Notes under the pieces: model-generated
Databases searched by the model: none
What the model was told of the DNA's origin: nothing
The model's input: the letters and a program-made list of their open reading frames with translations, nothing else
Shown: piece after piece, positions 4,450-43,637 of the stretch
Layout: each line of letters opens with the position of its first letter
Position numbering within the stretch: position 1 is the first letter of the stretch
DNA from: Andalucia godoyi And28
Lineage: Eukaryota > Protista > Jakobida
Assembly: GCA_009859145.1 (NCBI GenBank)
Contig: VRVR01000031.1
Location: 186,001-250,000, forward strand
Length of the DNA stretch: 64,000 bases
Direction of reading: 5' to 3'
Program-made: the position numbers and the translations under genes

Positions 4450-5088
4450 TTAAGAGTCCTCTTCGTCGTCTTGGAGGGGTTGCTTGGTCGCTTCTTCGAG
4501 TTCAGCTTCCATCTGTGCCTGTGCGTCGGCATCGAGGTGGACTTCTGCAGGGAAGAGTGCGGTTTCTCCGACGAATGAAAGATCGTTTCTTCCGGTAAGC
4601 TTCTTTGCGAGCCAGAGGAAGGGCTTTTCGAACTGGTAGTTTGATTTTGCAGAGATTTCATAGTACTGCAAGTTCTTCTTGCGGTGGAAGGTGACGTTCT
4701 TGGGCTTGACTTTGCGGTCCTTGACATCAACCTTGTTTCCACAGAGTACGATGGGGATGTTGTCGCACACCCTCACGATGTCGCGGTGCCATGTAGCCAC
4801 ATTCTTGTACGTCTGGCGCGAAGTAACATCGAACATGATGATTGCACACTGGCCTTGGATGTAGTATCCGTCGCGCAGTCCTCCAAACTTCTCCTGTCCA
4901 GCAGTGTCCCACACATTGAAGCAGATATCTCCGTAGTTGGTCGTGAAACGAATGGGATGCACCTCCGCCCCAACCGTCGGAACATACGACTTTTCAAACT
5001 CTCCCGACTTGTGACGCTTCACAAACGTCGTCTTGCCGACGGCGCCATCGCCTACCAAAAGACACTTTGCAGTCGGAATCTGGGCCAT
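4450..5088 (-). CDS. RAN: GTP-binding nuclear protein Ran
   Basis: [56 protein letters not shown], acidic tail DDEEDS. Confidence 0.97.
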
Positions 5089-5523
5089 TTCTTCACAAAA
5101 CTTGCACTTGTACCAAGAAAGAGACTCGAAATATTATCACCCTGTGGACACAGAAAGAGACGGGCAGAAAGAAGTAAAAAAACAAGGGAAGAGAATTTAA
5201 CCCAAAAAACAAAACAAAACAAAACAAAACCTATATATGCAAATTAAAAAAACAAAAACAAAAACAAAGAGGTAAGCGTCGCGTGTGACGTCGTCATTCA
5301 GCTGATGAAAAATCAAGTGTGTGCAAATTAGGAGAACCAGAGGGACTTACAGGGGAGGCTGCACCGTGGTAAGCGCGACGCTGACAGGTCAGTGCCTCTG
5401 TTAAGCACTGGAGACGCGCCTTCCCCCCCTTTTGCCGCTTAAAACGTCCGTAGATGAAGATTGCTGTTCCACGTCCGTAGTGACTTGTTAGGCGACGAAG
5501 CGTACTCTTTTGAATGTTTTTCA

Positions 5524-6126
5524 CGCCTACATTATATACACTGAACATGCATATCCACGAATAGACATGCATATTCAGTCTTGCATCCCGTTGCCGGGAA
5601 GGGGATAGGCCCCAACACGCCTCACGGCGCTCTTCAGATAGATGCTCCGCGCTCCGTTCCCAATCTCGATCAATCGGTGAGCCACTTTCTCAGCGTGGCA
5701 CGTTGTTCCTGAGAAGGGTGCATTTTGATGCTGACGGTCCTAGCAGCAGGCGCTTTCGTGTCCGCAGTTGCAGCGATTGATGCAACTGGAGATACGAGGG
5801 TAGGAAGAGGCGGTCGGCGTAGTGACACGTGGTCTCTTAGGAGGTCTGCGGGACCTAGGAGGCCCTGTATCGAGCGGCGTAGGCGTAGGCGAATGCGTCA
5901 TCCCAGCACACTCACGCCCATATTTGAATAAAAAGAGTGAAACCAAAAAAAGTGAAACCCACGAATGATAGAATAGATGGCTACGGATGCTGCGTTAAAG
6001 AGTGTCGAAAATGCGGAGCCTGTGTCACCGGCTGAATTTTGGCCGAGCGTGCGTAAGCACGAATTCACCGTGTCTGTTTATGTGTACTTCCGTATGCATG
6101 ACAATGACCTGTCATTATTCACGGTT
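5524..6126 (-). repeat. Dispersed hairpin-rich non-coding element, copy 1 (inverted relative to copy 2)
   Basis: Block-wise near identity to the reverse complement of 42133-42621; several hairpins; carries two private insertions. Confidence 0.9.
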
Positions 6127-6559: not shown

Positions 6560-7507
6560 ATGCGAGCTGCGAAAGATGTAGAGTCTCAGGAGTCAACGTC
6601 ACATGGCGGCGGTGGTGGCGGAGGAGGGGGAGGAGGAGGAGGCAAGGGTTCGGATGATGGGTCGGCAGCAGCGGAAGCGTCCGAGTCTGAGATTGCGACG
6701 AGTGCTGCGCTGGATGATTTTTTTGCGCAAGCAGAGGGAGTTCAGACGAGTCTTGGGAAGGTGGATTCCAATATTACGGCGATGGAGAAGCTTCAATCAC
6801 AGATCATGAACAACACGATCCCGGAGAAGCATGCAAAATATGCAGACCAAATGGACGGTGTCATGGATGAGACGAGTGCGATACTGAACGGGGTGAAGAA
6901 GGCACTGGACGAAATGAAGACGACGAGCGATGCAAAGACGGCAAAGGACGGGGTTTCGTCAATGTCGCGTATTCAGGAAAACCAGCATCGGCAACTCTCC
7001 AAGGAGTTCGTAGAGGCGATTAAGAGGTTTCAGGCTGCACAGACAGGGTTCCGGGAAAAGACGCGGGATCGCATTCGTCGAGAAGTGACGATTGTGAATC
7101 CAGATGCGACAGAAGACGAGATTGAGGAAGCTGTGGAGTCCGGCGGTCAGTCAGTGTTTGAAAATGGAATGCAAGGACAGAAGCATGCGGAAGTGCGACA
7201 AGCGTACGAAATGATCCAGGAGCAGCACCGCGACATTCTGAAGATCGAAGAGTCGCTTGCTGAGCTGCATTCCATGTTTGTGGACATGGCAGCACTCGTC
7301 GATATGCAGTCCGAAGTCCTCGACAACGTTGAAAAGAACGTCGGAAAGGCCCTGGACTATACCGAGCAGGGTGTCAATGAGCTCAAGAAGGCGTCCAAGT
7401 ACCAGAAGGCCGCCCGCAAGAAAATGTGCTTCCTCATCGCCATCTTTGTTGTCATCGCCGTTGTCATCGCCGCATCTGTTGTTGGCGGAACTCAAACACA
7501 GGCTTGA
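6560..7507 (+). CDS. Syntaxin (Qa-SNARE, plasma-membrane/syntaxin-1-like)
   Basis: Habc-like helices, SNARE motif IQEQHRDILKIEESLAELHSMFVDMAALVDMQSEVLDNVE, C-terminal TM segment. Confidence 0.93.
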   Translation: MRAAKDVESQESTSHGGGGGGGGGGGGGKGSDDGSAAAEASESEIATSAALDDFFAQAEGVQTSLGKVDSNITAMEKLQSQIMNNTIPEKHAKYADQMDGVMDETSAILNGVKKALDEMKTTSDAKTAKDGVSSMSRIQENQHRQLSKEFVEAIKRFQAAQTGFREKTRDRIRREVTIVNPDATEDEIEEAVESGGQSVFENGMQGQKHAEVRQAYEMIQEQHRDILKIEESLAELHSMFVDMAALVDMQSEVLDNVEKNVGKALDYTEQGVNELKKASKYQKAARKKMCFLIAIFVVIAVVIAASVVGGTQTQA

Positions 7508-8463: not shown

Positions 8464-8536
8464 TAACCGAGGTGGGGATTGAACCCACGATCTCCGAGGT
8501 GTAAACTCGGCATCCTAACCACTAGACGACTCGGTT
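8464..8536 (-). tRNA. tRNA-Val(UAC)
   Basis: 73-nt cloverleaf: acceptor AACCGAG/CTCGGTT, discriminator A73, anticodon arm CCGAG-TT TAC AC-CTCGG, T arm GTGGG-TTCAATC-CCCAC. Confidence 0.9.
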
Positions 8537-9085: not shown

Positions 9086-9158
9086 TCCGCTATAGCTCAG
9101 TAGGTAGAGCGCTCGGCTGTTAACCGGTAGGTCCTAGGTTCGATCCCTAGTGGCGGAG
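9086..9158 (+). tRNA. tRNA-Asn(GUU)
   Basis: TCCGCTA/TGGCGGA acceptor, TAGCTCAGTAGGTAGAGC D arm, CT GTT AA loop, GGTTCGATCC T arm, followed by a T run. Confidence 0.95.
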
Positions 9159-9287
9159 CTTTAATTTTTTTTTCTTCTGTTCCCGTGCTCGTTGTTAGTC
9201 TGTTCTTATTTTTTCATTTACGAGCGTTGAGGAAAGGAATGCAGCACAAATGACAAAAGCTGCTGCACCAGGCCAAGCAGAGGGGAG

Positions 9288-12012: not shown

Positions 12013-12703
12013 ATGTCGAGGAGCGTTCCATTTCCTCACGCTGTTGCCACAAGCGCTCCTGCGATTACGTCTTCTCCTGCAGCAGCAGCAGCAGCAGCAG
12101 CAGCAGCTGGGGGTTCCAGTAGCGGTGGAGGATCGGGGGGATCGTCGTCTCTGAACACGAGTAGTGCATTGTCGTCTGCACCAAGTTTTGCTCATTTGCA
12201 ACACTTGATGCATCCTTCTCACTATGCTGCTGCGTACTCACATGCACACGGAGTCTCAGCACAGCCCTCGTCGTCTTCTTCCACTGTTATTCCTACGACC
12301 ATGACTCCGGCTACGTCTGCGTCTGCGTCGCTGTCGAATACGCCTTCGACTGCGTTTTCCGTTCGTCAGTGGCCATCGTCGGCAAGCGCTGCAGGTACGT
12401 CTGCACTGGCATCAATCGACGCATCGGCATTTATGATTCCAAACATGCATCTCCAGACCCATCCGTCGTCGTCGCTGTCTTCTTCTTTCAACTCCAGTTC
12501 CAACTTCAATTCGAATTTTAATACCAGTGGCAATGGGAGTGGGAGTGGGAGTGGGAGTGGGAGTGCGGGCAGTGGGAGTGCGGGCAGTGGAAATGGGATC
12601 ATATTTTCGTCGATTTCGAATGCACAGATGGGTGCCCTTGGTGGAACTGCCAGTGCATCCCATTCATCGTCACCCACCTCTCAAACGCAAACGCAAACGC
12701 AAA

Positions 12704-12767
<64 letters not shown>

Positions 12768-14799
12768 AGCCCATGCGCAGACGCAGGTCCAACTGCAGAA
12801 TCAAGTTCAGTTTGGAAGTGCGAGCTTTCCAGCGGGTGTAGGTGCCTTGCTGAATGGATCATCAGGCCACGGTCTGCATCTTCCGTCCAGTACGAATATG
12901 AATGGGGGGTATGGCAGCCAGAGTCTGCAACAGCAATTTCCAAAGACCAACATCAATAATAGTAACAACAGTTCCAATAACAATGGCAATAGCAATGGCA
13001 ATAGCAATGGCAATAGCAATATCATAAGTGGTGGGTCCGAGTTCGAGTCGCTGCATGGCCAGTTGCTGCCTCCGGTGGGGGTTGTAGGTCTTTTTGGAGG
13101 ACCACAGGGGTTTCATACGTATCCGTCTAGTGCATCGCAGCAACTTCAGCAACTCGATGTGAATGGATCCATGCAGCCTATGGGACTCGGAATGGGTACT
13201 GGCATGGGTACTGGCATGGGCACGAACATGGGTATGAACATGGGTGTGGGAATGGGCGTGGGAATGGGCGTGGGAATGGGCGTCGGAATGGGGATGGGTT
13301 CCGGATTGGGAATGAGTCCAGGAATGAATATGGGCATGATGTCGAATGTACAGACCAATATGCTGCACTCGATGAATGCAGCAGGAGTGACAGGAACGAA
13401 TGGAATGTACCAGCAAGGATCCGGAACTGGTACCGTGTTTGGACCTGGGAATGCCGTTCTGCTGAACAGTGGTCTGTACTCATTGTCGGCCGCGAGCGGG
13501 AGTGGTATGGGAAGGGGGACCGGTGTCAGCAGTGGGAGTGGGGGTGGTGGTGGTGGTGCCAGTAGTGGCGCGCGTGGAAATGCAAATGCCAATCCGCCAC
13601 CGAGTTTGCACTCAATGGTGCAACAGCCACAGCAGCAACACAACATTAATGCTGCTCCGCCACCTTCTGCAGGGCATGGATTGTCGTCGCATTCTCTTGG
13701 ATTCCACAATTCTTTAATGGGGACGGCGAACGGCCAGAGTGTTTCCGCTTCGAGTTCTCGAATGTCATCGCCAATTTCACTGCAGCAGCATCAACAGTAC
13801 CACCTTCAGCACCAGCAATCTCAGCCACAGCCGCCAACACAGCAACAGTATCCTGGGATTATCCAGTATGGTTCAGGAATCACACTGCGACCGCCGTTGG
13901 ACATTCCGTCGTCAGAATTTGTGATGATCGTGTCGGAAATTAACGCATATGTACGTAGGAATTGGAGGTTTGACATGAACACAAACGAATTGTTTGCAGT
14001 GTACATGCGTAATAATGTGGAGCAGATGTCGCGCAGCTGGAGATCGGGAGATCGTGGCCGAAAGACAGTGCAAGCGCGCCTTCGTCAGTTTGTGAGACGC
14101 AAGAATTGCGCGATCACAGTGACAGTTGCCGAGTCGCTTATGGATGTTGCTCAAGCAGCTTCGTTTTCACGCATGCAAGCGCGCCGTCGACCAGCCACGA
14201 AAGCTTTGCTTGCGGCAGCTGCAGAAGAAGAAGAAGAAGACAGAGAAGGAAGAGAGGAAGAGGAGAAGGAAGAAGGAGAAATAGAAGCAGAAGAAGCTGA
14301 AGTTGAAGCAGAAGCAGATGCAGATGCAGTAGAGGAAGAAGGGGGAGGGGATGGTGACAGGGAACATGATGGGGCCGAGCACAATAGAGAAACAGAGGAT
14401 CAGGACGATCAAGATCGGAAACCGGCCAAGATCAGGAGATTGGACGATAGTAGGGCTCGTATGAACGAATTTGAAACCGAGAATTCGAGCCATCATGGGA
14501 AAAAAGAAGCCGTGCGGACACCGATAGTTCAAAGGCCTGGGAAGAATGGTTCGGGCGCGGACGCAAGTGCCGTTGCAGGTCAAAAGGCACGGACCTCGCC
14601 AGGTGAGGTTCGTCCGTCAGATGACGCCTCTTCCTCCGCGTCGTCTTCCACTGCTTCCAACAGCAGTCCATTTGACTCCACCACATGGATGCCGGTTGTT
14701 GAATTTGCACGTACGAACCAGCTTTCTGCTGCATGGATCCTAGATGCAATTCGCAAGACGTTCGAAGACCAGCAGCACCGCGTTCCGTGCGACTTGTAG
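12013..14799 (+). CDS. Low-complexity protein (Ser/Gln/Asn/Gly-Met repeats, acidic tract), unknown function
   Basis: 928-aa ORF with ATG start, flanked by AT-rich spacers; one compact basic/helical segment around aa 625-730. Confidence 0.75.
12703..12770 (+). repeat. (GCACAG)n coding repeat, Ala-Gln tract
   Basis: Tandem hexamers inside the 12013-14799 ORF. Confidence 0.9.
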
Positions 14800-32673: not shown

Positions 32674-33360
32674 ATGACGGCCTTGGCGAGCGTGCGCAGG
32701 CTGACGAAAGACGACGTGGCAAGATACAGGGCACTTCGACTACGGGCGTTTCAAGAGTCGGCGAGTTCATTCAGCGAGAGTTTTGAAGACGAGGTGAATC
32801 AACCAATCGAGTATTTTCAACGTGTGATGATGATGAGGTGCGACGATGGCGACGGCGACGGCGACGGCGACGGCAATAACGACAGCCAAGAACATTTCAC
32901 GCTTGGTGCATTTGCAACAGCCATGGCAGCTGCCTCCCATCCACCGGTGTCCACTGCAGTGTCCCTGTCAGCGCCAGTGGCCGGGCGAGTGCCAGGGTCA
33001 GTGGCTGGGTCGGGGTCCGGATCACAAGAGGATGAGCCGGTGCTTATTGGGATTGCAACGTTTAAAAGGGACGGTCGATCAAAAGCGCGCCACAAGGGCT
33101 ACATTCACACAATGTTTGTTGCGCCAGAGCATCGAGGCTGCGGAATCGGGCAGTCCATTCTGAGACAGCTGATCGAGCAGGCGAGATCGCTGGATGGGCT
33201 GGAGCAAATGCATCTGTGGGTGCTGCAGCCACACACATCGGCTGCGCGAAGAATGTACGAGCGCGTTGGGTTCGTGATGCAGGGCACTGTCGTTTGTCGT
33301 GATTTAAAGATCGGTGGGGTGTATGTTGATGCAGCGTACATGAGCCTTGGCTTCTCATAA
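32674..33360 (+). CDS. GNAT acetyltransferase, bacterial-like
   Basis: RRLTKDDVARYRALRLRAFQES..SF, KARHKGYIHTMFVAPEHRGCGIG, ARRMYERVGF; low-complexity insertion. Confidence 0.9.
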   Translation: MTALASVRRLTKDDVARYRALRLRAFQESASSFSESFEDEVNQPIEYFQRVMMMRCDDGDGDGDGDGNNDSQEHFTLGAFATAMAAASHPPVSTAVSLSAPVAGRVPGSVAGSGSGSQEDEPVLIGIATFKRDGRSKARHKGYIHTMFVAPEHRGCGIGQSILRQLIEQARSLDGLEQMHLWVLQPHTSAARRMYERVGFVMQGTVVCRDLKIGGVYVDAAYMSLGFS

Positions 33361-36176: not shown

Positions 36177-38780
36177 TTACGGATTCTGGGATTTTCCTGG
36201 CCAGTTGCGCTGATCAACGTCGGCGACCTGAATTGCGGACAGGATCCACATATTGAGCATGGCTTCCCATTCAAAGATACGGAATGGAAGCGCAAGAGAG
36301 GATGGTGCCTTCCAGACGGGAGACCCCTTCGGAACGAGCTTCTCAACATCGCCTACCATTGACTGATCCTCCGGTCCGAACAACAACAAGTACGCCTTCG
36401 GATCCGAGAAGTCCTGCTGGAGGGGCCCGTGCGGGAACTCGAGAAAGTCCGTCGAGATGGGCTGATGCGCGAAGATTCCTTCCGAGAACTTGAGGGACAG
36501 GTTGAATCCGGCGACAGGCCACGGGTGACCTGCAAGGACATGCACGGGCCGAGCCTTGCTTGCAACCACCGACGTCCAAGCATTGTCTGGCAGCAGTCGA
36601 TACGCCTCCTGTACCGCCTTAAAGATCTTTTGCTGCTGCTCCGGCAGATCGAAGATGCGGGGAAGATCCTTGTCAATCTTCTCGTCGTCGAATGCAGAAA
36701 ATACAATCTGCAGCGCCGCAACGTATCCACACAGCGGTCCAATAGTCCGGATGAAGATTCCCGATTCATCTGCAGCTGGAATTCGAACAATCGTCACGTC
36801 CGCGGCGGACTCGAGCTCGGCGTTACGCGCCGCAGTCACGACAATCGTCTGCGCAAAGCGAGACCGGATCTCGGGCTTCAATGCCATTGCAGAGTGCGGG
36901 GACAGTCCCTGCGAAAACACAACCAAGGTCGTTGACTCCTTGTCAACTTGCAGCTCAGGAATCGCCGAATAAGGAACAACATCCGCAAGCACCTTCTTAC
37001 CGTGCAAAACGTACTTGCGAATCAAAAACTGCAGGTACAATGCGTGTGCCTTGGACTCGCCAGTGCCAGTCAGCACAAACCGAGCGCATGCGGACTTGTT
37101 CAGTGGTTTGGCCATGTTCAGACGCTGATCAATGCCATACGATGCAAGCATACTCTTGAGAATACGCTCGGAATCCATCGTTCTGTGCAGCAGCAGATGG
37201 TGTCCTTTGGGATCTGCGCTGTCCTCGACGTTGAGAATGCGATGCACCCGGATTCCTGCCTTGTCTAGCGCAGACGACCAAGAATCGCGAGCCAAATCGG
37301 AATGCGAAATCAGCTGGCAGGACTTGACACCACGGTGCAGCAACAGCTGCACAGTCGCATCACGGTCTGCGTAGTCTCTGCCTTCCGAAACACCCAGCAG
37401 TTTGAAGATCTCTGCCTCCGCCTGTTCCGAAGTCACATTCGCATTGATGGCTGCATGGTTTTGCATCATGTAGGATGCTGCAAGCGAACCAAAACCAACT
37501 CCGCGACCGTCGTGCGGATACAACAACAAGAATCCAGCGCCATGGCGAACGATGGCCTCAATGGACCGGCGGAAGATCTTTCGAGGGCGAACGGACGGAT
37601 CATTCTTGTCCAGCGGGAATCTGTTCCAAAGGGATTCCGACTGCAAACGAACGACAGGAAGGCCCAACGGATCGACCTCGGCACACTCGTACTGCAAAAG
37701 GACGAACTCGGTATTGAGCACGATATCACGATACACGTGGATTCGGAACCAGTTGGGCTTCATGCGCAGCGGGCCTGGAATTTCCTGTCCTTCCGGAACG
37801 CGAATCAGATGACGGCCTCCGCGAATCCACTCATGCTCCACGTTGGGGCCAAGCTCCGATTGCAAAGCATCGTACTCGGCTTGCGACAGGACAACGCGAT
37901 TTGAAACAGGCCTCATTGGCAGCAGGTATGACGCCATGTAGATAAACCGCTGTGCGTTCGGCACGACATGCGGTTCGAACGGGGCGATTGGATAGATGCT
38001 CTGAGGCAGCTGCGCAGCGAATCGTGGCAGCTTCACCTTGGTCAAGAGCAGATGGTGCCCGCTCATCGCCTTTGACTTCAGATAGGCAGCGTTGAACGGC
38101 CCTGGCGTGAACTCAAGGTTAACAATCTCGGTGATCTTGAATCCAATTGAAGTCAAGCCCTGAATCTTGTCCGGGTTGTTCGACAACAGCACCCAGTCTA
38201 CATCCGTTCGCAGCCCCATGAGTTTGCACGCGTCGCCGATGGAGCGATAGTCTCTGTAGTCCGGCTTGACACCCATGCACGCATACGCCTGGAAGGTGTT
38301 GATTCTCTCATGCGTGAACTGCGTCAGCTGAATTCCACGGGCTTTGATGTTGTACCCGGCAGCGCGTCCTTCTTGCAACAAGTACCACAAAATGCCTCCA
38401 CAGTCCGACTTTGCAATGCGTTCAAGCGCACCATGAAGCTGCTGCACGCAGTCGCAGTCCACTCCATGCAGCGTCTCGGACGAAATGCACGATGAGTGCG
38501 CCCTCGTGTAGAGCCTCTTTGAGTTCCGGATGTCTCCGCGGCCCGAAACCACCGCCATGGTGTACGCATTCGTCGTCACGTCCTGGAACACAAGCATTCG
38601 AAAAGTCCCTACGCGAGTTGGAAGGTCTGCTGCAGAGAGGAAAATCGTCGTTCCATGCATCGGACGCTGCTTCAGAACCTCTGGAGACGGATTCACAAGA
38701 TCAATCCCAGACGGATTCAGAAGCGAATAGTCCGGGGTAAACGGACCCGGTGACTTTGGCGATGCGGTTGGGCTGTCCAT
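36177..38780 (-). CDS. Fusion enzyme: GTP cyclohydrolase II-like + degenerate cyclohydrolase + GlmS-type double SIS (867 aa)
   Basis: RAHSSCISSETLHGVDCDC, QEGR, DYRDY, LLSNNPDK, NAAYLKSKAMSGHHL; second copy VVRLQSES...HDGRGVG...RDY; SIS motifs TGTGES, FSQG, LKFSEG, EFPHGP, DVDQRNWPGK. ATG at 38780. Confidence 0.85.
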   Translation of the reverse strand: MDSPTASPKSPGPFTPDYSLLNPSGIDLVNPSPEVLKQRPMHGTTIFLSAADLPTRVGTFRMLVFQDVTTNAYTMAVVSGRGDIRNSKRLYTRAHSSCISSETLHGVDCDCVQQLHGALERIAKSDCGGILWYLLQEGRAAGYNIKARGIQLTQFTHERINTFQAYACMGVKPDYRDYRSIGDACKLMGLRTDVDWVLLSNNPDKIQGLTSIGFKITEIVNLEFTPGPFNAAYLKSKAMSGHHLLLTKVKLPRFAAQLPQSIYPIAPFEPHVVPNAQRFIYMASYLLPMRPVSNRVVLSQAEYDALQSELGPNVEHEWIRGGRHLIRVPEGQEIPGPLRMKPNWFRIHVYRDIVLNTEFVLLQYECAEVDPLGLPVVRLQSESLWNRFPLDKNDPSVRPRKIFRRSIEAIVRHGAGFLLLYPHDGRGVGFGSLAASYMMQNHAAINANVTSEQAEAEIFKLLGVSEGRDYADRDATVQLLLHRGVKSCQLISHSDLARDSWSSALDKAGIRVHRILNVEDSADPKGHHLLLHRTMDSERILKSMLASYGIDQRLNMAKPLNKSACARFVLTGTGESKAHALYLQFLIRKYVLHGKKVLADVVPYSAIPELQVDKESTTLVVFSQGLSPHSAMALKPEIRSRFAQTIVVTAARNAELESAADVTIVRIPAADESGIFIRTIGPLCGYVAALQIVFSAFDDEKIDKDLPRIFDLPEQQQKIFKAVQEAYRLLPDNAWTSVVASKARPVHVLAGHPWPVAGFNLSLKFSEGIFAHQPISTDFLEFPHGPLQQDFSDPKAYLLLFGPEDQSMVGDVEKLVPKGSPVWKAPSSLALPFRIFEWEAMLNMWILSAIQVADVDQRNWPGKSQNP

Positions 38781-39478
38781 GAGCAATAAGATTTTAATAT
38801 AAAAAAACCAAAAAAGTACGCAGGACAGAAAGCAGAGACCAATATCAAAAACAAAAACAAAAACAAAAACAAAAATAACAATAACAATAACAATAACAAT
38901 AATGATCTCAAGATAGTAAAAGAAGAGAGACGCGCGATCTTGAATGGAGGAGGATAAGTGGAATACGGAAACAGAGGAGCCCCCATTAAAGACGTGTCCG
39001 CGAGTGTGTTTTTTCTTTTTCTTTTCTTGGATTTGAGAGTGATGAAGCATCAAGCCGCTCCCTCTCCCCCCCCCCCCAAGAGGTTTTACGACTGCGCAGG
39101 AGTTGAAGAACTTGCAGCTTCATGTGAGTTTGTGTGGCTGTTTGCGGGCATTTTTCATGGTCCGAATCCCTGTGATCTTTCATTAAAAGAAGGAATCACT
39201 CCGATCGTTGCTTTCCTTCTTCTTCACGTTTGAATACATACATATATATGTAAATACCAAGATCAAGTCACTTCATCCGTTTCTTCTTTTATTTTATATA
39301 ATAGATTATATATTTTAAATCGACTTTTCCTTCCTTCAACCTTTTTCTTTTTTCATCCTTGATTTATTGGTGAATTTCACGTTTGCCTGCACTTTTTGTC
39401 TGCTGTTTTTATTTTTGAAAGACTGCTTTCTTCTTTTTCTCCTGTTTCCACCACCACTCCTCCTCTTTTTTTGTTGAA

Positions 39479-42007
39479 ATGACGTACAAGTTCAAGGTCC
39501 GCTTTCGTAACGAAGTCCGCCGATTTTCGCTGGAGCGTCCTGTGACACTGCATGCACTGTTTTCGCGTCTGGTGATGATGTTTTCGCCTTTTTATCCTCA
39601 GTTTCCATCGTCTGCTACTGCCGAAGAAGCAGGGGCGTTGCTTGTGACGTATTTTGATGGGAACGATCAAGTCACGATTCGGGATGACCAGGATCTCGAG
39701 GAAGCGCTCGTCATCGGGAAGCCGGTTCTGGAGCTCACCGTCCATCTTTCGCAAGATGCACGGACCCAAAAGGGAGAATCAAGCGGCGAGTCATCCGACA
39801 GTGAGGCCCATTGCCACGCAAAGTCCCGGCATACCCACGGCCATCACGGCCATCACCGTCAACACGGTCATCACGGACGCGGCCATGGACGTCACAATCC
39901 CTTCATGAACCTGATTGACGGACTTCTCGGCGGAATCGGAGGAGCTTCAGGTAACGACGAAAAGAAAGAGGACCGTCCTAGACATGGATTTCGTCACGGA
40001 CACTGTTTTCGTAGTTTTTTCCACCCCGAGGTGAACAGGAATGCATCCGAAACACCGGCTCCCTCTGCACCCTCGTCTTCCTCGTCTTCTTCTGCTGGCT
40101 CGTCTTCTGCCGCCGCTTCTAGTTCTGGAGCTGGGGCGGCGTCCAATGCGAGTGGATCGACTGGACCGTCGCATCGCGAGGAAAAGAAGCCAAAAAACAC
40201 AAGCGAGTATCCTGAGTTTGCTCCGGATCTGATTTCTGATTTGGAAATTGTGCTGAATTCATTTGCAGCGAATCCAGAGCAGGTTGGTCATCTGCTTGAC
40301 ACGGGGCTTCCGCTGACTGTTCTGGCTCGACTCCAGTCCCTTGGAATGCCCGCACGTGTGCTTCGTCACCGTGTGAAACAGTTTGCGCATGAGTTCTTTT
40401 CCACGCGCGAAGGCTTGTTGATGAACATGAGGCAGACTGTGTTCTCGCCCGCGTTCTTTGGTGTCCTTTGCGGCTTGAATACCCCGGCAGGACAGGAGTT
40501 CATTCGCGGTGTTGTGTCGACATTTGGATTTGGAATTTCCATACCAGAAGAGTTTGATGTGATGACGCTCCTTCCTACCATCATGTCACAGTTCGGTCAT
40601 CATGGACGGCGTGGTGCGTGTCCTTTTGATTTTTTTGACGCGATGCACGGCAGCACCCAGGATGGCAATGAAGGTCCGTCCACTTCCACCGCAGAAGCGC
40701 CTCTGCAGCCGGAGGTTGCCGTTCCTGTGAAGAAGGTCGATGCACCGGCTCAGCAGCAGCAGCAGCAGACGCCTCGGATGGAGGAGAAGAGCGCCGTTCC
40801 TGCTCCGAGTTTCCATGTGCCATTGTCAGCAACATCATCGACATCGTCCTTGTCATCTGCCTCCACTTCTCCTTTCCAGCCCCGTGCGTCGACGAGCGAC
40901 GTAGATATGGTGCACTCGTGGGAAGTTGTATCCAATGACGATGACGATTCTGCAAAGTTTGAGAACTTGTCACGCAAGGTCGACTTGCTGTTGAAGGACG
41001 AAGATGATGTCTCGGAGAACGGGAACGTCACGTCTTCCGAGCTCGTCGGATCCTCCTACACTGCTGTGGGCGACTTTGAGTCGTCGGCTGTGAGCACCGC
41101 ATCCAGCGCTGTTCCCGTAGCGCCGGGCTTGTCCGCGTCCTCCGCCTCCGTGACTCCCACGACTGTCTCGTCCACATACTCCATGGCAGCCTCTCAGGAC
41201 AATACTGCCGCAGTGCTTCTCCCCGTCTCTCCTGTCGCTGCTGCACCTGCACGTGTACCTGCGCCCACTCCTGTTCTTGTCCCAGCACCAGCACCAGCAC
41301 CAGCACCAGCACCAGCACCAGCACCAGCACCAGCACCAGCACCAGCACCAGCACCAGCACCAGCACCAGCACCAGCACCAGCACCAGCACCAGCACCAGC
41401 ACCAGCACCAGCACCAGTACCAGTACCAGCACCAGCACCAGCAACAGTTTCGAGCAAGGTGACTGTCTCGAATGCAGCATCCAAGGCGACCGCGAGCTCA
41501 GCGTCTGTTGTGGATTCCGACCTTCCGCGCTGTGCCCTTCTGTCGTTCTCCATCTCTCCATCAAAGATTGTGCAGCCCGCATCTCCCGTGACGCTTGAAT
41601 GGCGTTTCCGAAACACTGGAAGCGTTGCATGGTCGGAGGGCTGTAGGCTCATGCTCGAGTCCGGAGATGTAGTTCCAAAAGCACCGATGTTTGTGGAGCT
41701 TCCGTCTGTTGCACCTTCGCACATCTGCACCGTTTCCGTTCGTGGAAGCGCACCCGACGAGCAAAAGTCAGTCAACTCCGTGTGGAAACTGGTGTCGCCA
41801 GACGGCCAGTGTTTCTATGTGGCACGCTCGCTGTTCCGCGCAGAGTACAAGGAGGAAATGAAGCAGCTGATCCAAACCATCCGCGAAATGGGCTTCTTGG
41901 CAGTCCCGGAACGCCACATCTTTGAACTCCTGACTGCCAGTCACGGTGCTCTAACGTACGAAGTTGTCAACGAGCTTACTCGCCTGGAATCCATGTTTTC
42001 GAAATAG
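39479..42007 (+). CDS. NBR1/p62-like autophagy receptor (PB1, LIR-like motif, FW/Ig-like domain, UBA-like C-terminus)
   Basis: PB1 YKFKVRFRNEVRRF...TYFDGNDQVTIRDDQDL; SWEVV near an acidic run; WRFRNTGSVAW...WKLVSPDG; IREMGF. Confidence 0.75.
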   Translation: MTYKFKVRFRNEVRRFSLERPVTLHALFSRLVMMFSPFYPQFPSSATAEEAGALLVTYFDGNDQVTIRDDQDLEEALVIGKPVLELTVHLSQDARTQKGESSGESSDSEAHCHAKSRHTHGHHGHHRQHGHHGRGHGRHNPFMNLIDGLLGGIGGASGNDEKKEDRPRHGFRHGHCFRSFFHPEVNRNASETPAPSAPSSSSSSSAGSSSAAASSSGAGAASNASGSTGPSHREEKKPKNTSEYPEFAPDLISDLEIVLNSFAANPEQVGHLLDTGLPLTVLARLQSLGMPARVLRHRVKQFAHEFFSTREGLLMNMRQTVFSPAFFGVLCGLNTPAGQEFIRGVVSTFGFGISIPEEFDVMTLLPTIMSQFGHHGRRGACPFDFFDAMHGSTQDGNEGPSTSTAEAPLQPEVAVPVKKVDAPAQQQQQQTPRMEEKSAVPAPSFHVPLSATSSTSSLSSASTSPFQPRASTSDVDMVHSWEVVSNDDDDSAKFENLSRKVDLLLKDEDDVSENGNVTSSELVGSSYTAVGDFESSAVSTASSAVPVAPGLSASSASVTPTTVSSTYSMAASQDNTAAVLLPVSPVAAAPARVPAPTPVLVPAPAPAPAPAPAPAPAPAPAPAPAPAPAPAPAPAPAPAPAPAPAPVPVPAPAPATVSSKVTVSNAASKATASSASVVDSDLPRCALLSFSISPSKIVQPASPVTLEWRFRNTGSVAWSEGCRLMLESGDVVPKAPMFVELPSVAPSHICTVSVRGSAPDEQKSVNSVWKLVSPDGQCFYVARSLFRAEYKEEMKQLIQTIREMGFLAVPERHIFELLTASHGALTYEVVNELTRLESMFSK
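41282..41442 (+). repeat. (CCAGCA)n coding repeat, Pro-Ala linker
   Basis: More than 25 tandem hexamers inside the NBR1-like ORF. Confidence 0.95.
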
Positions 42008-42132: not shown

Positions 42133-42621
42133 AACCGCTGAATAATAACACGTCATTGTCATGCATACGGAAGTATGCATAAACAGACACGGTCAATACT
42201 GGCCGACACAAGCATGTGTTTCACAGGAATTCGTGCTTACGCGTAGCCATCGATCATTCGTTGGTTTCACTTTTTTAATTCAAATATGGGCGTGGGTGCG
42301 CTGGAATGACGCATTCGCCTACGCCTGCGCCTGCGCCGCTCGATACACGGCCTCCTAGGTCCCGCAGACCTCCTAAGAGACCACGTGTCACTACGCCTGC
42401 TGCTAGGGCCGTCAGAATCAAAAATGCACCCTTCCCAGGAACAACGTGTCACGCTGAGAAAGTGGCTCACCGATTGATCGAGATTGGGAACGGAGCGCGG
42501 AGCATCTATCTGAAGAACGCCGTGAGGCGTGTTGGGGCCTATCCCCTTCCCGGCAACGAGATGCAAGACTGAATATGCATGTCTATTCGTAGATATGCAT
42601 GTTCAGTGTTTAATGTAGGCG
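42133..42621 (+). repeat. Dispersed hairpin-rich non-coding element, copy 2
   Basis: Reverse-complement homolog of 5524-6126; UUCG, GUGA, GCAA and GGAA-looped hairpins on this strand. Confidence 0.9.
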
Positions 42622-42941: not shown

Positions 42942-43637
42942 ATGTCGTTTGCGTCGGTGTCGAACCAGCTGTCACAGAATGTTCCGCATCTTGAGCACAT
43001 GTTCATTTCGATTTCTGGATTGATCGGGGCTGGGAAGTCGACGCTTGCGACGGAGCTTGGGAAAGAACTCAACTTGCCTGTTCATTATGAAGAAGTGATT
43101 GACAACATTTATCTTGCGGATTTCTACCAAAACCCTGCGAAATATGCATTTCCCCTGCAAGTCTATTTACTGAATAAGCGTTTTGCACAGCAGCAGCAGA
43201 TCATTTGGTCTGGGAAGGGGGCAGTGCAGGACCGGTCGATCTATGAAGACTCTGTGTTTGCAAGGATGTTGTACCGCGCAGGCCTCATGGAAGAGCGCGA
43301 CTACCAGACGTATGTCTCGTTGTTTCAGAACATGTCGAATTTCATGAGACGTCCCAATCTCATTGTGCATTTGGAGGTTTCTCCAGAGGAGTCGCTCGAG
43401 AGAATCAAATCGCGGTCGCGGGACTGTGAGACCACCATCTCAATCGAGTATCTCCGCAACTTGCACGCCGCGTACGAAGAGTTCCTTGAGGACATCGCCC
43501 ATGTCATTCCCGTTCTCAAAGTCGACTACTCGCGGTTCAGAACCGCTTCAGAAATGGCCCGTGTCATCCGCAAGGAGTTCACCTCCATGCTCAACATTCG
43601 TGATGTGTCGTGGAGAGAACCGTCTCCTGCGATGTAG
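42942..43637 (+). CDS. Deoxynucleoside kinase (dNK family)
   Basis: ISISGLIGAGKST, FPLQVYLLNKRF, QDRSIYED, RIKSRSRDCE; ATG at 42942. Confidence 0.92.
   Translation: MSFASVSNQLSQNVPHLEHMFISISGLIGAGKSTLATELGKELNLPVHYEEVIDNIYLADFYQNPAKYAFPLQVYLLNKRFAQQQQIIWSGKGAVQDRSIYEDSVFARMLYRAGLMEERDYQTYVSLFQNMSNFMRRPNLIVHLEVSPEESLERIKSRSRDCETTISIEYLRNLHAAYEEFLEDIAHVIPVLKVDYSRFRTASEMARVIRKEFTSMLNIRDVSWREPSPAM

Follow-up and report, generated by a model that had tools for sequence, protein, structure and literature searches.

Two short inverted repeats in the nuclear genome of the jakobid Andalucia godoyi are probably decayed remnants of a TnpB/Fanzor transposon

A 64-kb window of the nuclear genome of Andalucia godoyi And28 (64,000 nucleotides, positions 186,001 to 250,000 of the forward strand of contig VRVR01000031.1, GenBank assembly GCA_009859145.1, numbered here from 1) carries two inverted copies of a short repeat. 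An original prediction made from these letters had described the repeat as either a structured RNA family or a non-autonomous element. What kind of sequence is it? Our analysis indicates that the two copies are probably decayed and non-autonomous products of internal deletion in a DNA transposon that once bore the gene for a TnpB/Fanzor (OMEGA) nuclease. The observations behind this reading are the homology of three copies, remnants of a nuclease domain within them, a frameshift common to all three and a deletion common to the two in the window, and the lack of terminal inverted repeats (TIRs) as well as of target site duplications (TSDs) in the window copies. The second half of the original prediction, a non-autonomous element, is supported by sharp ends, by a third and more complete copy elsewhere in the genome, and by the remnant of a TnpB/Fanzor-type nuclease gene.

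Copy B occupies 42133-42621 on the plus strand (489 nt), between an NBR1-like gene (39479-42007) and a deoxynucleoside kinase (dNK) gene (42945-43637). Copy A occupies 5524-6126 on the minus strand (603 nt), between a Ran gene (4450-5088, minus strand) and a syntaxin gene (6560-7507, plus strand). Comparison by blastn, nhmmer, and alignment revealed that the two are reverse-complement homologs with exactly the ends that had been predicted: the left end is AACCG (at 42133 in copy B and 6126 in copy A), and the right end is AATGTAGGCG (at 42621 and 5524, respectively). The boundaries are sharp in both copies, with similarity ceasing abruptly beyond AACCG and AATGTAGGCG. Identity between the copies is 95 to 97% across the 3' 230 nt and ∼90%, with many indels, across the 5' half. 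The aligned blocks measure 192 nt at 97% (42421-42612 versus 5535-5726), 230 nt at 95%, 137 nt at 90.5%, and 65 nt at 91%, and the stretch 42198-42260 of copy B is scarcely alignable to copy A. The best-conserved block (42394-42621, plus strand), which has 3.5% substitutions and 2 small indels, comprises the C-terminal codons of a former open reading frame (ORF; stop codon TGA at 42570-42572) and the right end. Indel events numbered 15 in the 5' 250 aligned nt versus 2 in the 3' 227 nt (p=0.005).

The difference in length between the copies (603 versus 489 nt) arises because copy A has an extra 67 nt (5749-5815, minus strand) together with other indels. This segment, found only in copy A, contains an 8-bp hairpin (CAGTTGCA-TCAATCGC-TGCAACTG, 5765-5788) and a stop codon. 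Since a single nucleotide is missing 28 nt further downstream, the net gain is 66 nt (22 codons), and the reading frames outside that stretch are therefore preserved. The segment suggests that internal deletions occurred stepwise within the repeat family. Searches with blastn (word size 7) and an nhmmer profile found no third copy inside the window, and the same programs detected no homology between the flanks of copies A and B. Exact-pattern scans for further DNA copies gave no match in metagenome contigs (two patterns), GTDB genome contigs, or viral contigs, and two loci with relatives of the flanking dNK gene (L001 and L002) had neither synteny nor the repeat.

The repeat had been described as lacking a shared ORF. 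This is true superficially, but comparison of reading frames showed that both copies share frameshifted coding remnants. Copy B contains an ORF of 88 amino acids (42306-42572); the ORF of copy A has the same beginning and end and is disrupted by the stop codon inside the 67-nt segment. The start of the ORF (42306-42398, plus strand; from 5901 in copy A) consists of an ATG and ∼31 codons common to both copies (MTHSPTPAPAPLDTRPPRSRRPPKRPRVTTP). It is proline rich and includes a basic cluster, RSRRPPKRPRV, that resembles a nuclear localization signal (NLS). This segment may correspond to a disordered, NLS-bearing N terminus of the parent nuclease; about 60% of Fanzors have an NLS (Jiang 2023, PMC10530073).

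A phmmer search with the 88-amino-acid ORF against 1.84 billion representative proteins returned three matches. Two of these are internally repetitive proteins that look spurious. The one real match, P0136, is the EukProt entry Andalucia_godoyi ANDGO_01483, an 82-amino-acid "hypothetical protein" with 73% identity over its last 44 residues, and it represents the third copy of the repeat. When P0136 was compared with the window by tblastn, its residues 1 to 15 were located at 42424-42468 and its residues 43 to 82 at 42450-42569, in different frames and with an overlap of 19 nt; copy A displayed the same two-frame pattern. The first match is a frame-a remnant, MHPSQEQRVTLRKWL (42424-42468, plus strand; 5723-5679 in copy A), and the overlap marks a deletion junction (42450-42468, plus strand; 5679-5697 in copy A), where the same 19 nt correspond to two stretches of ANDGO_01483, in different frames. 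Because the two P0136 matches overlap in this way, both window copies must lack 100 nt that are present in the third copy. These 100 nt encode GAEYTSKTCGRCGEIHARRGAEAAKC, a zinc ribbon, and were apparently lost by deletion between two similar direct repeats of 19 to 21 nt. The four-cysteine zinc ribbon is consequently found in neither window copy.

In TnpB and Fanzor proteins, the zinc ribbon is followed shortly by the RuvC-III motif RD.N(G/A)A.NI. A remnant of this motif lies at 42476-42515 on the plus strand, with DRD in frame b (42476-42484) and NGARSIYLK in frame c (42489-42515), and copy A is identical here (5671-5632). Both window copies have SPIDRDW in frame b and NGARSIYLK in frame c, with one extra G in the GGG at 42486-42488 between them. 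Removal of this G yields DRDWNGARSIYLK (IDRDWNGARSIYLK), which matches RD.N(G/A)A.NI. The frameshift is common to all three copies, P0136 reading LIEIGNGA at this point; therefore, all three descend from an ancestor that was already defective. The zinc ribbon of P0136 reads EYTSKTCGRCG, followed by 13 residues and a single Cys, and its YTSKTC..CG fits the [TS][TS]xxC..C zinc finger signature of TnpB/Fanzor (Bao and Jurka 2013, PMC3627910).

How well do these remnants match a nuclease profile? The relevant Pfam model is PF07282 (Cas12f1-like TNB, formerly OrfB_Zn_ribbon), which has a length of 60 positions and a gathering cut-off of 26.3 bits. In its native frame, P0136 scored 18.3 bits against it (E=0.0026), under the cut-off. 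The same residues of native P0136 matched Cas12f1 among PDB sequences (E=4.6) and Cas12e in NCBIfam (E=0.25), each at chance level when taken alone, and the searches of PHROGs, NCBIfam, and, in the native frame, PDB produced sub-threshold matches only. A composite of the third-copy zinc ribbon and the frame-corrected C terminus of the window copies, which joins two loci and uses a frame correction picked after the frames had been inspected, reached 31.1 bits (E=2.7e-7, model positions 24 to 60 of 60). Each of five control sequences remained below the cut-off: 18.3 bits with no frame correction, 20.6 bits with frame b continued, 17.8 bits with the segment shuffled, 20.9 bits with DRD changed to ARA, and 21.6 bits with NGARSI scrambled. 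Against PDB sequences at E<=10, 10 of the 18 matches to the composite were TnpB, Cas12f, Cas12m, or the mimivirus Fanzor2 (TnpB-like protein L79), and the best PDB match (8hr5_A, E=0.036) aligned across both the zinc ribbon and RuvC-III. We regard the composite as strong but not conclusive evidence for a TnpB/Fanzor origin, because the frame correction is post hoc and the sequence is assembled from two loci.

Several observations weigh against this origin. In a six-frame scan, the native frames of the window copies gave no Pfam match in any frame; RuvC-I and RuvC-II are absent, ∼90% of the nuclease ORF is gone, and no RuvC or OrfB_IS605 match was obtained. A score above the threshold requires both the joining of two loci and a correction chosen after viewing the frames. 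In ANDGO_01483 the second zinc knuckle is degenerate, with one Cys instead of CxxC, and a Glu lies 5, not 6, residues before the first Cys, off the Fanzor "Ealt" spacing (PMC10711439). Only three copies are known, one of them as a protein only, and past mobility of the element is putative. The candidate guide RNA discussed below has no support from covariation, with 0 compensatory pairs in RNAalifold.

An intact TnpB or Fanzor gene has an ORF of ∼400 to 900 amino acids with the RuvC-I Asp (DPG in Fanzors) and the RuvC-II Glu. The window copies are remnants and not genes, since the element measures 489 to 603 nt and has neither RuvC-I nor RuvC-II. As we would reconstruct it, each copy would have retained the left end (42133-42305 in copy B) with a small hairpin, then the ORF start with its NLS-like basic cluster. 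Large internal deletions would then have left the last ∼50 codons of the nuclease (C-terminal remnant, 42424-42572), with RuvC-III split by the 1-nt frameshift. The right end would follow, its long hairpin starting at the stop codon, with a 14-nt tail in copy B. DNA transposons that are internally deleted and non-autonomous commonly have this layout.

The long right-end hairpin is where it had been predicted, as are the smaller stems. The left-end hairpin (ATGCATAC-GGAA-GTATGCAT, 42161-42180, plus strand) has 8 bp and is set 28 nt in from the left boundary. Its counterpart in copy A (6080-6099) carries two transitions that disrupt pairing on the plus strand, and the opposite strand still pairs. 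The right-end hairpin (42568-42607, plus strand) has 18 bp, a UUCG loop, and two G-U pairs; its counterpart in copy A (5540-5579) has three G-U pairs on the strand that matches the plus strand of copy B. From this hairpin to the right boundary, there are 14 nt in copy B and 16 nt in copy A.

The guide RNA of TnpB and Fanzor, whose guide part derives from the flank, directs the nuclease to the empty donor site. This omega (right-end) RNA begins at the 3' end of the ORF and extends across the element's right end (PMC10432273, PMC10711439). The conserved 3' ∼230 nt of the repeat, on the plus strand, are thus the place where such an RNA would lie, whether formerly or perhaps still transcribed. The plus strand of this block folds better than the minus strand, and the imperfections of the right-end hairpin are G-U on it, which is the orientation expected of an omega-RNA. 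The impression of a structured RNA would then have a real basis, because the 3' block is the omega-RNA region and its better-folding strand is the sense strand of the ORF. The window copies are unable to make a nuclease; at most they might give an omega-RNA-like transcript or be acted on by a transposase encoded at another site. In another discoban, Naegleria lovaniensis, Fanzor2 loci with omega-RNAs are known (Saito 2023, PMC10432273).

Which enzyme might have moved the parent element? Domain scans of the window proteins found no transposase gene in the 64 kb, and two DNA copies say nothing decisive about the mobilizing enzyme. Resemblance to Fanzor and TnpB elements in general lies in the C-terminal succession of [TS][TS]xx, zinc ribbon, and RD.N(G/A)A.NI, recognizable across the copies, in the N-terminal NLS-like cluster, and in an ORF end that abuts the right end of the element, the site of the guide RNA in these families. 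Unlike them, the repeat keeps only ∼80 codons, which are frameshifted; its window copies have lost the zinc ribbon, and RuvC-I (DPG) and RuvC-II are absent. The remnants do not permit a choice between Fanzor1 and Fanzor2.

Three types of element offer themselves for comparison. With the IS200/IS605 family of insertion sequences the repeat shares same-strand hairpins close to its two ends, the right one 14 to 16 nt from the end, the lack of TIRs and TSDs, a TnpB-type gene that reads toward the right end, and AACCG at the left boundary, which is the position of a target/TAM motif. In two copies such a motif cannot be separated from the element's own first bases, and AACCG may be either. The repeat differs in that no Y1 HUH TnpA is found in the window, and reports of the family from eukaryotes are lacking (Yoon 2023, PMC10711439). 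When the first 60 nt were compared with the last 130 nt, no inverted match was better than an 8-mer, CATGCATA, located within the hairpins; it is the only sequence that the two terminal hairpins have in common, and 52 to 61 of 500 shuffles reach it (p ~0.1).

Helitron2 (Helentron-like) elements likewise have hairpins at both ends, no classical TIRs, a sense Fanzor gene or remnant near the 3' end, and frequent internal deletions, and CRe-1/2/3 of Chlamydomonas, which are Helitron2 elements of the non-autonomous kind, carry Fanzor1 (PMC3627910). In contrast to these, the flanks of the repeat are not T-rich and the window has no RepHel gene. The asymmetric terminal inverted repeats of Helitron2, one at the 5' end and the other just upstream of the 3' hairpin, were searched for in the repeat and not found. 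Canonical Helitron ends (5'-TC ... CTRR-3', between A and T) are also not seen, the ends being AACCG(C)TGAAT... and ...AATGTAGGCG. Eukaryotic IS607-type elements with Fanzor2, which use a serine-recombinase TnpA, share the lack of TIRs and TSDs, and the Fanzor2 type is known from the discoban Naegleria. For recombination, IS607 uses GG dinucleotides that match between its two ends (PMC10711439); in the repeat, the right junction GTAGGCG has a GG and the left junction AACCG, read on that strand, has none. A CG core common to the two junctions may fit an IS607-type element instead.

The hairpins near each end, the lack of TIRs and TSDs, and the TnpB-like remnant recall IS200/IS605 and Helitron2. 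In a more specific version of the transposon reading, the repeat would be the eukaryotic equivalent of IS200/IS605, mobilized as single-stranded DNA by an HUH enzyme, and its 3' block would to this day encode an omega-RNA that serves, in trans, an intact Fanzor at another site of the A. godoyi genome. We consider this version a long shot.

Could the repeat belong to another class, such as a solo long terminal repeat (LTR), a miniature inverted-repeat transposable element (MITE), a short interspersed element (SINE), or an unclassified dispersed repeat, with its likeness to a zinc ribbon and RuvC-III coincidental? We think this rather unlikely. In its favor are the sub-threshold native-frame match to PF07282 (18.3 versus 26.3 bits), the lack of any family match for the window copies alone, and the weakness of the matches from other libraries. 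However, the features that would define such classes are missing from both copies: there are no TG..CA ends, TIRs (both copies compared), poly(A), tRNA-like head, or Pol III boxes, and no direct repeat abuts the ends of either copy when the flanks are read directly. The original prediction had already noted the absence of TIRs, TSDs, and Pol III boxes, and in this it was correct for both copies. Two candidate TSDs were rejected, TCCATC beside copy B and AGTACG beside copy A, as 6-mers 11 to 21 nt outside the homology with non-homologous sequence intervening. In addition, two independent motifs, the zinc ribbon of the third copy and RD.NGA.NI of the window copies, occur in the correct order and at the correct spacing, with a joint E=2.7e-7 and all five controls at <=21.6 bits.

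The other half of the original prediction, a functional structured non-coding RNA gene family unrelated to transposons, including one of retrozyme or viroid type, now appears quite improbable. The repeat as a whole does fold better than shuffled sequence: z scores were -4.1 (plus) and -1.7 (minus) for copy B and -2.6 (the same sense as the plus strand of copy B) and -2.2 (the other strand) for copy A. Against this, the conserved block without its terminal hairpin (42394-42560) gave z scores of +0.3 to +0.7 on both strands, which is no better than shuffles, and the excess folding energy is located entirely in the palindromic terminal hairpins. The short stems listed earlier are present, yet they are no commoner than chance. 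Three GNRA/UUCG loops on the plus strand were equalled or surpassed in 25 of 2000 shuffles; as 3 of 18 small hairpins on that strand, against a window background of 6%, they are not a significant excess.

A transition within a stem leaves a G-U pair on one strand and an A-C mismatch on the other, so that each such change amounts to a coin toss. The four differences between the copies that had been said to keep pairing on the plus strand are all transitions; our tally of one-sided stem changes is split 4:3 between the strands, with the one at 42559 (CCCG-GCAA-CGAG) and the two in the left hairpin of copy A (42176 and 42177) pairing on the opposite strand only. RNAalifold with the two copies found 0 compensatory pairs on either strand. 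Its consensus energy for the 3' block was -82 (plus) versus -68 (minus) kcal/mol, the plus strand being the sense strand of the ORF. Five one-sided changes still pair in the plus-strand consensus fold versus three in that of the minus strand, a count biased by the selection, within RNAalifold, of structures that accommodate such changes. These signals of structure, the strand energies and tetraloops, are at most suggestive, and two sequences cannot establish a structure. The same consensus fold predicts a 7-bp helix that closes the 3' block by pairing CGCCUGC (42394-42400, adjoining the deletion zone) with the final GUAGGCG (42615-42621); both arms are identical in copies A and B.

With Rfam 15, only two tRNAs were found across the window at gathering scores. 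At E<=10, both copies and their flanks yielded nothing credible, only chance matches to microRNAs, CRISPR repeats, and small RNAs on the hairpin, with no known RNA family and no ribozyme core (hammerhead, HDV, twister, or similar). The retrozyme/viroid-like proposal is thus left without support, and the repeat contains, moreover, recognizable protein-coding remnants of a transposon nuclease. Some narrower RNA and promoter candidates were also rejected. A hammerhead at CTGAAGA-ACGCC-GTGA-GGCGT has no GAAA after the stem, and a Pol III gene with T-run terminators was dropped. A small nuclear RNA-like gene with an Sm site on the minus strand was proposed from AUUUUUG at 42418-42424 (AUUUUG in copy A) and an 11-bp hairpin (GGUCUCUUAGG...CCUAGGAGGCC); it had no Rfam match to small nuclear or spliced leader RNAs and no conserved promoter, and the resemblance is probably due to chance. 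A promoter module was dropped as well, and ATGCAT/TGCATGCA as a promoter word is only ∼2-fold enriched in the window.

There is very little to recommend a local segmental duplication or gene conversion tract of intergenic DNA, for example, of a promoter module, with no mobile history. The window holds these two copies only, separated by 36 kb; both lie upstream of a like-oriented gene, and a TATA-like TATATAAT lies near the 3' end of copy A. However, copy A is located between divergent genes and would count as "upstream" of one or the other whichever way it pointed, and the TATA-like motif is not kept in copy B. The flanks have no homology, and a third, more divergent copy with another indel structure is found at another gene model.

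Least credible of all is a real small-protein gene family (82 to 88 amino acids, as annotated for ANDGO_01483) with copy A as a pseudogene: the frame of copy B is open, and the third copy is annotated as a gene with the same MQD-stop ending, but copy A is broken by the stop in its 67-nt segment, the three ORFs are in different frames upstream of their common C terminus and look like chimeras across deletion junctions, and the 50 codons shared by copies A and B differ by 3 non-synonymous changes and 1 synonymous change when the alignment is read directly.

If the repeat is indeed the wreck of an RNA-guided-nuclease (Fanzor/TnpB) transposon, a seemingly unclassifiable "structured element" is placed in a recognizable class, and such elements are placed in a jakobid, a group that matters for early eukaryote evolution. 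The searchable literature yielded no paper that mentions Fanzors in Andalucia, and no description of elements of this kind from jakobids is known. The analysis also suggests that frameshift-aware comparison with a sister copy can expose the origin of short non-coding repeats that native-frame domain scans overlook. Should intact relatives and a transposase exist in the same genome, the hairpin-ended layout without TIRs or TSDs would help explain how OMEGA systems are mobilized in eukaryotes.

The nuclear genome of A. godoyi (VRVR00000000) is compact, at 20 Mb; according to its description, which does not include the repeat, subtelomeric scaffolds with "transposon/viral-like sequences" were omitted from the assembly (PMC7050145). 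Those scaffolds could be the home of an intact Fanzor gene. The window itself is gene-dense, nearly intron-free eukaryotic DNA of ∼50% GC with genes on both strands, including those for Ran, syntaxin, a PAP2 phosphatase, the NBR1-like receptor, the dNK, Cdc73, and an RNB exonuclease, as well as two tRNA genes. A GNAT gene is located at 32674-33360, which corresponds to 218674-219360 of VRVR01000031.1. The NCBI record of this contig (locus L003) has 2 genes called in 20 kb of a gene-dense region. Other proteins of the window are known from EukProt only and lack close relatives, the best match to the dNK having 73% identity. The public annotation of the genome is therefore partial, with few NCBI genes and most window proteins in EukProt only.

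Some minor features of the window were also observed. Upstream of Ran, a possible 120-nt intron in the 5' untranslated region (5231-5350, minus strand) begins with GTAAGT (5350-5345) and has a pyrimidine-rich tract and a TATAG ending at 5231; its length falls within the 55 to 756 nt of A. godoyi introns (PMC7050145), and it would put the start of Ran transcription near the right end of copy A. The sole Rfam matches in the window form a divergent tRNA pair, tRNA-Val(TAC) at 8464-8536 (minus strand) and tRNA-Asn(GTT) at 9086-9159 (plus strand), with ∼550 bp between them. The NBR1-like gene (plus strand) contains a (CACCAG)n / (GCACCA)n tract at 41207-41470 that encodes ∼35 Pro-Ala repeats, and similar hexamer tracts occur at 12680-12805. 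Finally, a 958-amino-acid ORF (36177-39053, minus strand) unites a GTP cyclohydrolase II domain (riboflavin pathway) and, at the C terminus, a SIS domain, an unusual architecture.

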